A DNA stretch of 63,912 nucleotides, the filler included, from Octopus bimaculoides (Eukaryota), in the NCBI RefSeq assembly GCF_001194135.2. It is 11 parts of 11 records of this genome, joined end to end, with 100 filler letters (N's around TTAATTAATTAA, not from the genome) between each part and the next. Parts side by side here need not be neighbours in the genome. Positions count along the whole stretch, not along the records: positions 42,595 to 45,123 come from NC_069005.1; 10 more parts are not named here. One strand, given 5' to 3'. Position numbers and translations under genes: made by a program. Below the pieces are notes generated by a model, which worked only from the letters and a program-made list of their open reading frames with translations, searched no databases and was not told the origin of the DNA. Below are positions 42,595 to 46,544 of the stretch, in pieces (positions within the stretch are counted from its first letter, which is position 1; each line of letters begins with the position of its first letter).

Positions 42595-42819
42595 CCGTAG
42601 ACAGCAAATACTTTTTATGGGCAATTTGATTTTATATATGTTTTTTTTAATCGAAATCTTTTAATTGACAATAAACCTATTTGTTAAATAAATAAATGTA
42701 AAAATATATGTTATTTTAAGCAAATATTTATGTATAAATTTCATAAGCGTTTATAAGGTCCCTAAGGTAAAGCCTGAAATATAAAGGGGTCCGCAAGTCA
42801 AAAAGTTTGAAAACCCCTG
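42595..42819 (-). mobile_element. hAT (Charlie-like) element end
   Basis: Ends AAAAAGTTTGAAAACCCCTG (reverse complement CAGGGGTTTTCAAACTTTTT), a typical hAT TIR; the other end is lost in the gap. Confidence 0.6.
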
Positions 42820-43396
42820 CACTAGAATATTGTAACTAAGCAAAACGATGACTAAAAAGCGAGATACTTATTTAAAAAGTCACCTAAGGAGACGGACACA
42901 ATCTACACCTATGATGTAAGACAATTGACTGTACAGTATCTCGCCTGTGAGGTACAGGGATCAGGACGAGTCCAAACGATTGTAATGGTTTTTGATAAAG
43001 TTCTCGTTAATTCCCTTTTCTGTTTCTGCTCGCTCTATCCATCCACCGGTCCATCCAAGACCGACCTACCGACCTACTTTCCTGTCTGTCTGTCTTATAT
43101 GCATGCTTGTGTAATTATGTCATGGGTGCGTTTGTATGAATGTAAATGTACGCACACATACACTCCTCTATATGTGCCTATGTATCTGTATATACATATA
43201 CTACTTTATATATGTGTATGCACACACACACACACACACACATAAGCATTATTTATAGAAACACACTTCTGCATAGAATATAGAATATAGTATATAGTAT
43301 ATTCCTTTGAGAACTGACGACACAAACAATATTTCTGTGACCCTCGTTGTAAAACATTAAAACCTCAAAAATTGTTCTTTCTTCTCATTTCATGGT

Positions 43397-43775
43397 TGTC
43401 CTCACTCCGTCGCTTACGACGTCGAGGGTTCCAGTTGATCCGATCAACGGAACAGCCTGATCGTGAAGTGAACGTGCAAGTGGCTGAGCACTCCACAGAC
43501 ACGTGTACCCTTAACGTAGTTCTCGGGGATATTCAGCGTGACAGTGTGTGAGAAGGCTGACCCCTTTGAATTACAGGCACAACAGAAACAGGAAGAAAGA
43601 GTGAGAGAAAGTTGTGGTGAAAGAGTACAGCAGGGTTCGCCACCATCCCCTGCCGGAGCCTCGTGAAACTTTAGGTGTTTTCGCTCAATAAACACTCACA
43701 ACGGTCTGGGAATCGAAACCGCGATCCTACGACCGCGAGTCCGCTGCCCTGGCCACTGGGCCATTGCGCCTCCAC
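43397..43775 (-). mobile_element. Full-length chimeric SINE (head D + family-C 3' module) with 11-bp TSD
   Basis: CATTTCATGGT at 43386-43396 and 43776-43786; the 5' ~200 nt match 5270-5582, the 3' part matches the module at 12030-12170 and 36570-36770. Confidence 0.85.
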
Positions 43776-43833
43776 CATTTCATGGTACGGCTGCATTGAA
43801 AAACTGTTGTCTCGCATGTCTGTTCCATAAAAG

Positions 43834-43882
43834 GAAAACTGAAAGCATTAAAAAGAACGGAACTACTTTCACTTTAATTTCC
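43834..43882. promoter_or_regulatory. Pair of IRF-element (IRF-E/ISRE-like) motifs in opposite orientation
   Basis: GAAAACTGAAAGC (43834-43846, +) matches G(A)AAA(G/C)(T/C)GAAA(G/C)(T/C) exactly. ACTTTCACTTT (43865-43875) reads AAAGTGAAAGT on the minus strand, preceded there by GGAAATT. Confidence 0.55.
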
Positions 43883-44279
43883 ACGAAAAGCATCATCGCG
43901 CGCGCACATCTGTATGTATACACTGTCTAGTTCTGGTGACGCATTCGTTACATATTACTGCAAGTCTTTACTCGCAATTGGGATTATACAGACTCATATC
44001 TCAACAAGTCTTCACTTCTACAATATTATATTTCAATCAATCACTTCGGATACTCTCGAACATTAATTAAGACTTCTAAACACTACATTAATCGAATTCT
44101 ATGCATTAAGTATCGGCAATTTTCCTTGATTACGTTCCTTCAAATGACATTTCTCGACCGAATTTAGAAATCCTGGAAATATACTTATTGTGAGTAAACT
44201 TCCCTTTCTTGAATTATTTTCAATAACATATACGGTATTTCTTTCCACCTGGTACGAAAACTATACATTCACAAACACA

Positions 44280-44654
44280 ATGACCCTTCAACTCAGTCCA
44301 AGTGATATCCGCTATACTCAAGATTCAATTGGCAGCAGGTTCCGTAACGGAATAACATTAAGTAGAACCATTTCAGATTTAGTCAAAGGTACAATCACGC
44401 CTGACAGCTTTCCTACAATTACAGTTTACCAAAAAGATGGGAAATACTACAGCTATGACAATAGGAGGCTATACGTTTTCAAAGAGTTGCAAAGGCGGAG
44501 TCAACCAGACTTGAAGATAAAGGTTTGCCTTACGTCGGCGGCACTATCACCATTGAAGTTCACGACGCATAACGATGGGCAAAGTATAATGGTCCGAGGA
44601 AATTCATCAACATTAGACTTGTTAAGCATGTCTTTTGATGACTTATTCTTGTAG
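44280..44654 (+). CDS. 124-aa ParB/Sulfiredoxin-superfamily-like protein (DNRRL type), apparently single exon
   Basis: Uninterrupted non-repetitive ORF: MTLQLSPSDIRYTQDSIGSRFRNG...FPTITVYQKDGKYYSYDNRRLYVFKEL...KFTTHNDGQSIMVRG. ATG in ACAAACACAATGA context (A at -3); AATAAA at 44679-44684, 25 nt after the stop. The IRYTQ and G.YY.YDNRRL pattern parallels the ParB/Srx GxxR motif region. The track starts the ORF at a GTG (44190), which is unlikely in a eukaryote. Confidence 0.8.
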   Translation: MTLQLSPSDIRYTQDSIGSRFRNGITLSRTISDLVKGTITPDSFPTITVYQKDGKYYSYDNRRLYVFKELQRRSQPDLKIKVCLTSAALSPLKFTTHNDGQSIMVRGNSSTLDLLSMSFDDLFL

Positions 44655-46544
44655 AATTATGAATTTAAAAAAAATAATAATAAATATCCCATTGCTAAAG
44701 GATATAAAAACAACAACAAAAACCAAAAAAGCTGCCGAATTTACTGTTCAGAAAACAATCTATAAACTTTAAATTTGCCCTTATGTCACCGACAGCATGT
44801 CTTCATTTAGAGAAGTGTCAAAAAACCCAAGTCTGTTGTATTTTATTTCAATAACCAACTCGCAAACCAAGTTATAATATAATTGCCATCATGCAAGAAA
44901 AACAAAAAAACAAAAACAAACAAACAAACAGACACTACACTGGAAAAGTTAATTTGGTCGGAGTTTGGTTTCCGTGAGTAATTTTTGCAAACTTTTACTT
45001 CCGACTTTTTAAAAACTGTAAATCTGAAAATGGCCGAAAGCGAAAAAGTTGCAGAAAGAGTGTGGAATAAAAATAAATAAATAAAATAAAAAATATAAAA
45101 AAGAAGTTTTTGCAGATTGTTTANNNNNNNNNNNNNNNNNNNNNNNNNNNNNNNNNNNNNNNNNNNNTTAATTAATTAANNNNNNNNNNNNNNNNNNNNN
45201 NNNNNNNNNNNNNNNNNNNNNNNATATATATATATATATATAGATACATACACACATATATATACAAGTATAAAGATATGTACGCGTATGAATGTGTATG
45301 TGCATTTTTGTGTGTATGTGTGCGTGTATGTATATGTGTGTGTTTGTCTGTCTATCTGTGTTTGTGTGTTTGTGAAAGTGTGTGTGTGTAGATAAAGATA
45401 TATCTAAAGATTAACAGGTACATTTATACAAATATATGTACATATATGGATGGATAGATGGATGGAGGTGTTTATATATATGTATACACACACACATACG
45501 CAAATACAATTATGTATTTGTGTATGTTTGTAAGTATATAGACATATATATATGTATACAACTATGTCTATATGCATACATACTTATGTGTATATAAGTG
45601 CACATACATATATATAATTATATACTTACATACATATACACACATGCATGTGTATGTATATATATATACACACACACATAAACATATATGTATCTATGNN
45701 NNNNNNNNNNNNNNNNNNNNNNNNNNNNNNNNNNNNNNNNNNNNNNNNNNNNNNNNNNNNNNNNNNNNNNNNNNNNNNNNNNNNNNNNNNNNNNNNNNNN
45801 NNNNNNNNNNNNNNNNNNNNTATATATATATCAATATTGTTATGTATAAGTACACACACACACATACACATATAGAGCAATATATTTCCTATATAGTATA
45901 CATATCAACATATGTATATGTAATATATCATACACGAGATATCGTTAAATCTGCGCACACCAACCAAAAATACACACATGTGGATGTATGTATGTATATA
46001 TGTATGTATGTATGTATGCATGCATGCATGTGTGTATGTGTGTATGTATGCATGTATGTACGTACGTATGTATATATACATATATATAGATATGTACTCC
46101 CATGTATTAATAGCAACCCTGCTTTATATATTATCATTAAATGCGATAATCTATCCATCAGTTTATTTTTCTTTCCCAGCCATTCTTATTAGCGGAGTGT
46201 GAATATGTGCCTCTATATATATATGTGTTTTTATGTGTTTGTGTGTGTGCATGCGGTTGTGTGTGTGTGTGCGTGTGTGTGTGTGCGTGTGTGTGTGTGT
46301 GTGAGAAAGAGAGAGAGAGAGAGAGAGTTCATGTGAGTATGTTGGTATGTATGTAGTATATACATTTATATATATAGTCCTTCCTTATATACATGTATAT
46401 TTAGATATATTTTGTTTAGTATGTAAATACATTCATATACATAAACGTATATATGAATGTACACGCATATAAATATATACATACATGCATGTATATATAT
46501 ATATACATACATATATATGTATATATTTATATGTCTATACATTC

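Follow-up and report, generated by a model that had tools for sequence, protein, structure and literature searches.

An intact octopus gene for a ParB/sulfiredoxin-fold domain related to the tips of bacterial polymorphic toxins

The toxin domain Tox-ParBL1 has been described as a predicted ParB fold with a conserved [ST] towards its N-terminus and a [NT][RT][RT] motif, its prototype being the C-terminus of the MafB protein NGK_2271 of Neisseria gonorrhoeae (Zhang et al. 2012, Biol Direct 7:18). The same account lists HINT, RHS and FilH as its partners and Imm-SUKH and Imm44 as its immunity proteins, already includes metazoa in its distribution, and holds its eukaryotic acquisition to be independent of that of sulfiredoxin. 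Among ParB-fold toxins, only ToxB has been characterised biochemically: it is a CdiA tip with the ParB-CTPase fold which binds and hydrolyses ATP (bioRxiv 10.64898/2026.05.05.722872). ToxB needs the arginine of its GNHR motif to bind ATP, to hydrolyse it and to be toxic; the site is occluded by its immunity protein, and ToxB itself is without DNA-binding capability (bioRxiv 10.64898/2026.05.05.722872).

Here we compare with these systems a gene of Octopus bimaculoides. All positions are counted along the window, that is, the whole stretch of DNA presented (63,912 nucleotides, filler included), and the piece of genome analysed is 42595-45123, A+T-rich DNA of about 2.5 kb. Our best explanation, which we hold with a probability of roughly 60%, is that this piece carries a genuine, intact and intron-less octopus gene whose product is a toxin-tip-derived ParB/sulfiredoxin (ParB/Srx) NTPase or phosphotransferase, probably serving as an effector in host conflict or stress.

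The single-exon coding sequence occupies 44280..44654 on the plus strand and encodes 124 amino acids followed by a TAG stop. As the earlier note had read it, the frame is open from ATG to stop; moreover it has an orthologue in Octopus sinensis, LOC118767871, which is also its closest protein (77% amino acid identity, E = 2.4e-49), and it is far from a chance frame. The first in-frame ATG, at 44280, has an A at -3 and is kept in four of four O. sinensis copies. Upstream of it, the window and these copies differ by non-triplet indels, which support 44280 as the true start and indicate that a GTG-initiated upstream extension of the frame is not coding. The polyadenylation signal noted earlier carries little weight: an AATAAA recovered by pattern scan is present at 44679..44684 (plus strand), 25 nt past the stop, and is weak evidence because the piece holds 11 copies of this hexamer.

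Family matches span residues 4-108 or thereabouts and, together with the confidence of the structural model and its Foldseek matches described below, delimit a ParB/Srx-fold domain at 44289..44603 (plus strand, as are all features of the gene). The octopus protein retains all the positions that at least 60% of 162 domain segments of the family have in common, among them P7, I10, R11, Q14, D15, S16, I17, F21, G37, P45, I47, D60, N61, R62, R63, L64, F67, K93, F94, T95, T96, N98, G100 and R106. The motifs on which the original proposal was built are found at residues 10-17 (IRYTQDSI), at P45/I47/V49 and at residues 60-64 (DNRRL). In the first of these, I10-R11-Y-T-Q14-D15-S16-I17 (44307..44330), the arginine, glutamine, aspartate and serine are conserved in 78-91% of the 162 segments, with S16 at 78%. 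The predicted phosphate-binding motif D60-N61-R62-R63-L64 (44457..44471), at the N-terminus of a helix spanning residues 61-73, is close to invariant (N61 99%, R62 95%, R63 97%, L64 100%). Towards the C-terminus lies a family-specific motif, K93-F-T-T-x-N-D-G-x-S-I-x-V-R106-G107 (44556..44600), with K93 conserved at 78%, T95 at 85%, T96 at 87%, N98 at 78%, G100 at 96% and R106 at 85%. The protein stops 16 residues past the domain, in a low-confidence tail (residues 109-124, 44604..44651, pLDDT about 50) with the acidic and hydrophobic ending SMSFDDLFL.

Profile collections do not recognise this protein: it matched no Pfam family at E <= 10, PF02195 (ParBc) included, and no NCBIfam entry. Its fold was approached through an AlphaFold model built on an 86-sequence alignment, which reached a pLDDT of 89.8 and a pTM of 0.81, with 10-residue block means of 84-98 over residues 4-108 and only the last 16 or so residues uncertain; a single-sequence AF2 model (pLDDT 32.8) was of no use. 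When the predicted structure was compared with the PDB by Foldseek, the top 22 matches were all ParB/Srx proteins at probabilities of 0.8-1.0 (Noc, plant and human sulfiredoxin, ParB, Atu1540, Pfu-392566, SbnI and KorB), with unrelated folds appearing only below them. Against the viral library BFVD, every named match among the best 50 was likewise ParB/Srx. Query-normalised TM scores were modest across the two libraries, at 0.38-0.52; values of 0.38-0.48, short of 0.5, count against the fold. The model supports the ParB/Srx fold that had been proposed for the protein.

In the model, the D60-L64 motif follows a strand pair (47-52/55-58). Profile alignment with hhalign places it on the active-site motifs of two known branches of the fold. 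Against human sulfiredoxin (the sequence used is identical to that of PDB 1yzs/1xw3), the family profile scored a probability of 62.5% (P = 7e-5) and paired "YSYD-NRRL" with "YSFGGCHRY", such that N61-R62-R63 corresponds to C99-H100-R101. Against four PDB ParB N-domains it scored 36% (P = 4e-4), with N-R-R falling on the E-R-R of GERR. Two independent alignments therefore put R63 on the arginine of the GxxR motif and N61 at the position of the sulfiredoxin catalytic cysteine, while the glycine of GxxR is replaced by Asp60. DNRR is thus supported as the GxxR variant it was first taken for, each of the sequence-based tests being weak on its own. A single-sequence phmmer search of the PDB gave no match for the octopus protein, and a family-profile search of PDB sequences returned only matches to CTLA-4, which we rejected as spurious.

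An exhaustive HMMER scan places the protein in a large family: 1,915 clusters, formed at 50% identity, match with E <= 1e-3, and 356 of them reach E <= 1e-10. In many of these clusters the match is the last 100 or so residues of a long protein, and the octopus protein is 44-50% identical to such bacterial toxin tips. In bacterial relatives, Pfam models for PT-HINT, RHS, YD-shell and PT-TG match ahead of the domain, and no model covers the domain itself in 20 relatives. The homology to bacterial polymorphic toxins that had been proposed for this gene is evident in these architectures, with the domain C-terminal to RHS, PT-HINT or PT-TG; the scattered animal members mentioned with it were also found.

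The neighbourhood of the bacterial domains was surveyed with a narrow bacterial alignment in one genome per species, a scan that covers the sub-clade with the signature LDNRRLx[VA]F[QK]. It gave 80 bacterial and archaeal loci from Actinomycetota, Pseudomonadota, Bacteroidota, Firmicutes, Planctomycetes, Leptospira and the archaeon Methanolobus; no Neisseria locus was among them. Throughout these loci the domain forms the end of its reading frame, and in many cases that frame stays open over more than 1,300 codons ahead of the domain. Directly downstream lies a small ORF of about 85 amino acids, in many loci with a 4-nt overlap of the stop. Of these small ORFs, 64 can be aligned as a single family with the signature WEN...FLEA...W...AA..YE, and all 64 match the Pfam family DUF7660 (PF24693), for example at L003:4183-4443 and L004:4309-4566, whose proteins end in YE. 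Three longer downstream ORFs also match, bringing the total to 67 of the 80 loci. As it follows the toxin domain in these 67, often with the 4-nt overlap, we predict DUF7660 to be an immunity protein family. Judged by gene order, domain and DUF7660 form a classic toxin-immunity arrangement, and DUF7660 is probably the immunity protein of the domain. A literature search found no paper mentioning DUF7660. In the octopuses, six-frame translations gave no match to the DUF7660 profile, either in the piece or in the corresponding 38.8-kb O. sinensis locus.

Among animals, the domain occurs in cephalopods (O. sinensis with two loci, O. vulgaris with two proteins, and O. bimaculoides), bivalves (Tegillarca, with three tandem domains, Mya, Mactra, Dreissena and Mytilus), tunicates (Styela, with two domains, and Clavelina) and the hemichordate Glandiceps, and all of these holders are annotated as uncharacterised. 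A neighbour-joining (NJ) tree joined the window protein to LOC118767871 (95/100) and set the 80 bacterial sequences apart from those of animal type (76/100). A single clade of all the octopus paralogues received an NJ bootstrap of only 10/100, and their monophyly is not claimed. An apparently eukaryotic contig, ctg30305 of ENA ERZ25067590 (L083, 1.33 Mb), encodes many paralogues of about 127 amino acids, and sister contigs of 0.57-1.37 Mb carry several each, which points to a large expansion of the family. The tails of animal paralogues differ: some are acidic and aromatic, as in SMSFDDLFL, MDFDDLYMDFDDLYMDSDDEF, NAFFDMDDLFD and DSDSNFFY, while others end in a hydrophobic, tail-anchor-like helix or in a CaaX-like CCVIL, the latter seen for instance in one O. 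vulgaris protein. Such variable tails hint at tethering to membranes or partners.

The octopus locus itself is best read beside its O. sinensis counterpart. Window positions 43778-45098 align at about 82% identity to the LOC118767871 locus on a 28.9-Mb O. sinensis chromosome, and upstream blocks at 42820-42961 and 43171-43396 are collinear with the same chromosome. The region directly upstream of the gene (43778..44279, plus strand) is 86.6% identical to the O. sinensis units and holds long invariant blocks; it may comprise a promoter and 5' UTR. Further upstream, Rfam matches to mir-466 and mir-297 at 43148-43260 fell far below gathering scores and were discarded as composition artefacts, this stretch being TA/CA-rich low-complexity DNA with a (CA)n run. 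Between these lies a SINE-like element of 380 bp (43396-43775, minus strand, with a tRNA-like head at its right end), flanked by a 10-bp direct repeat, CATTTCATGG, at 43386-43395 and 43776-43785. In the O. sinensis units the CATTTCATGG site is single and the element is missing, which we read as a lineage-specific insertion about 500 bp upstream of the ATG; related copies, 87-91% identical, occur elsewhere in the O. sinensis locus. ARAGORN called no tRNA in the piece, the SINE head included.

The O. sinensis locus is an array of four such units, arranged head-to-tail with a spacing of about 9.2 kb (CM016883.1:20759171-20797989, referred to here as L001). Only the copy at L001:10001 retains a full frame, of 136 codons; those at L001:447 and 28412 have two small deletions each, and that at L001:19201 has a 1-bp deletion near codon 85. 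The annotated O. sinensis product, of 151 amino acids over 18.8 kb, seemingly joins pieces of different units, so that the public gene model may be chimeric.

The state of this array raises the question of whether the window gene, as part of a tandem family evolving by birth and death, has itself recently died or is dying, its frame open by chance and of no use to the animal. We consider this unlikely, and the evidence divides as follows. Three of the four O. sinensis copies are frameshifted, although assembly errors may account for some of these frameshifts, which sit in short homopolymers, and in the lineage of the window a SINE has landed about 500 bp upstream of the ATG. Over 107 domain codons, comparison of the window with the intact O. 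sinensis copy gave dS = 0.161 and dN = 0.120, hence an omega of 0.75 with a bootstrap range of 0.37-1.77 for this single pair, and the coding sequence (88.2% identical between the species) is no better conserved than its flanks (86.6-86.8%). As the omega interval includes 1 and the coding sequence resembles its flanks, constraint is not demonstrable by such overall measures. On the other side, the 124-codon frame is open here and the orthologous copy is open in O. sinensis, and the 36 family-conserved positions are untouched by any of the 22 amino acid differences between the two (hypergeometric P = 3e-5). That all 22 changes avoid these positions shows that the core is constrained. A dN/dS near 1, which the earlier note would have counted against the gene, thus lies within the interval, but the conserved core positions are unchanged. 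Such a distribution is consistent with a catalytic core that is conserved while the surface over it changes rapidly, without thereby proving current function, and in combination with tandem duplication and decay it is as might be expected of fast-evolving, conflict-type families.

What the conserved core would do is suggested by the fold. We envisage a cytosolic protein, free of a signal peptide and consisting of one ParB/sulfiredoxin-fold domain, in which a basic pocket formed by R11, N61-R62-R63 and K93/R106 is predicted to bind nucleotide phosphates, with D15 and D60 as candidate Mg2+ ligands. From the fold, the most likely chemistry would be hydrolysis or transfer of phosphate, that is, an NTPase or phosphotransferase. 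ATP hydrolysis by ToxB, for which its GxxR arginine is essential, speaks for this chemistry. SbnI, one of the Foldseek matches, is a serine kinase, so phosphotransfer also occurs within the ParB/Srx fold.

We doubt that the domain is instead a nuclease acting on DNA or RNA. That activity was favoured for both Tox-ParB and Tox-ParBL1 on the grounds that nucleases dominate polymorphic toxins and that ParB domains occur in restriction-modification-like nucleases (Zhang et al. 2012, Biol Direct 7:18), and the very basic pocket (R11, R62, R63, K93, R106) would suit it. However, the same authors note that the original assignment of ParB as a nuclease was built on wrong assumptions (Zhang et al. 2012, Biol Direct 7:18), the only tested ParB-fold toxin is an ATPase lacking DNA-binding capability (bioRxiv 10.64898/2026.05.05.722872), and in the 124-residue octopus protein no ParB-type helix-turn-helix module follows the domain.

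We consider it very improbable that a multi-copy transposable element is the carrier of this ORF. The gene is indeed present four times at regular spacing in O. sinensis, and each unit contains decayed reverse-transcriptase fragments. The multiplicity that the earlier note had named as damaging is therefore real, but it takes the form of a tandem array rather than a transposon: the copies stand head-to-tail at one locus, as expected from segmental duplication in tandem. The reverse-transcriptase fragments are broken, lie several kilobases from the gene and, where they retain clear motifs, are on the opposite strand; they are a decayed LINE duplicated along with the gene and not its vehicle. 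The ORF has its relatives among bacterial toxin tips and among ordinary cellular genes of bivalves, tunicates and a hemichordate. Bacterial contamination or misassembly, which the bacterial identity of the closest functionally interpretable relatives (the toxin tips at 44-50%) might suggest, is effectively refuted, in agreement with the earlier note's rejection of contamination, by an octopus SINE with its 10-bp target-site duplication in the flanks, by 82-87% identity of those flanks to an O. sinensis chromosome over about 2 kb, by the absence of a DUF7660 gene after the ORF and by the separation of bacterial from animal-type sequences in the NJ tree.

Returning to a toxin-derived NTPase or phosphotransferase as our preferred reading, we infer nucleotide binding, catalysis and any immune role of the octopus protein, whereas the gene with its homology and fold, the equivalence of the motif, the setting of toxin and immunity gene in bacteria and the constraint on core residues are shown directly. 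The protein has no cognate immunity gene nearby and belongs to a fast-evolving, duplication-prone family; the host would probably employ it as a regulated effector during some form of conflict or stress. Its ancestry and mode of evolution make an immune or conflict role plausible. The more specific proposal of an IRF-regulated antiviral effector found no support: the only exact GAAANNGAAA ISRE cores, two against 0.28 expected, are placed one 1.26 kb before the coding sequence and the other 380 nt after it and, as neither is in the proximal upstream region, they are not taken as evidence of IRF control. A GAAA-rich element, AAAGGAAAACTGAAAGC, resembling an IRF-E with one mismatch, is present at 43830-43846, about 440 nt upstream of the ATG; the equivalent O. 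sinensis stretch is purine-rich and related but non-identical, and the element is only loosely conserved.

A bolder scenario, which we regard as a long shot, is that marine invertebrates (octopods, bivalves, tunicates and a hemichordate) have domesticated an immunity-less NTPase of bacterial polymorphic toxins as an inducible, cell-autonomous effector, tethered to a membrane or a partner, which acts on the nucleotides of infected or stressed cells by depleting or modifying them. If true, it would be an animal counterpart of bacterial abortive-infection enzymes, evolving by tandem birth-and-death. To our knowledge, an activity has yet to be assigned to any protein of this ParB-like toxin clade, whether from bacteria or from animals. 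The occurrence of fast-evolving, duplicated and immunity-less genes in several marine invertebrate phyla makes the family a clean case for the taming of a weapon domain, and the octopus gene offers a compact member of 124 amino acids with an intact predicted active site, an orthologue and, in R62 and R63, evident targets for mutation. A by-product of the comparison is a probable immunity role for an uncharacterised Pfam family, DUF7660.

Set beside known systems, the octopus protein shares its N-terminal nucleotide-binding fold, and the correspondence of N-R-R to the E-R-R of GERR, with the ParB and Noc clamps (6sdk, 7bm8, 7ol9). It differs from ParB, Noc and KorB in having no helix-turn-helix, dimerisation domain, ParA-binding motif or Box III, and, lacking the first two of these, it is not a ParB clamp. 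Sulfiredoxin (SRXN1, 1xw3/1xw4; Arabidopsis thaliana, 6ky4) is likewise a minimal single-domain ParB/Srx protein of similar size, with Foldseek probabilities of 0.97-1.0, target-normalised TM scores of 0.50-0.56 and an hhalign correspondence of PxIxV...Y-S-x-(G/D)-x-x-R across the active-site strand-helix junction. However, the catalytic Cys99 of its FGGCHR motif is replaced by Asn61, and the octopus protein therefore cannot be a sulfiredoxin.

The likeness to ToxB lies in a ParB fold at the tip of a polymorphic (contact-dependent inhibition, CDI) toxin with a small immunity gene next to it, and in an arginine-containing phosphate-binding motif at the equivalent place. Yet ToxB was found through PF02195 and carries G-N-H-R, whereas the octopus family goes undetected by that model and carries D-N-R-R; the immunity family and the C-terminal half of the domain are also different, and ToxB is rare (52 species) compared with the 1,915 clusters of the octopus family. 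We conclude that the two are relatives in fold and not one family.

The remaining comparison is with Tox-ParBL1. Its conserved [ST] corresponds to S16 of the octopus protein and its [NT][RT][RT] to N61-R62-R63, and a ParB fold is predicted for both. Bacterial relatives of the octopus protein, which itself stands alone, form the C-termini of HINT and RHS polymorphic toxins as Tox-ParBL1 does, and both families are distributed over Actinobacteria, Proteobacteria, Firmicutes and euryarchaea, with stand-alone members in metazoa. The difference concerns the immunity partner, published as Imm-SUKH or Imm44: the sub-clade sampled here pairs with DUF7660, and no SUKH or Imm44 was found downstream of the domain in its 80 loci. 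Neither Pfam nor NCBIfam holds a curated ParBL1 profile. The match to Tox-ParBL1 suggested in the earlier note thus stands for motif, fold, partners and phyletic spread as published, and fails for the immunity partner in the sub-clade sampled. Compared by its published signature rather than by the sequence of its prototype, the family appears to fit the Tox-ParBL1 type, and the octopus gene adds a member to an already described kind of system rather than a new kind.
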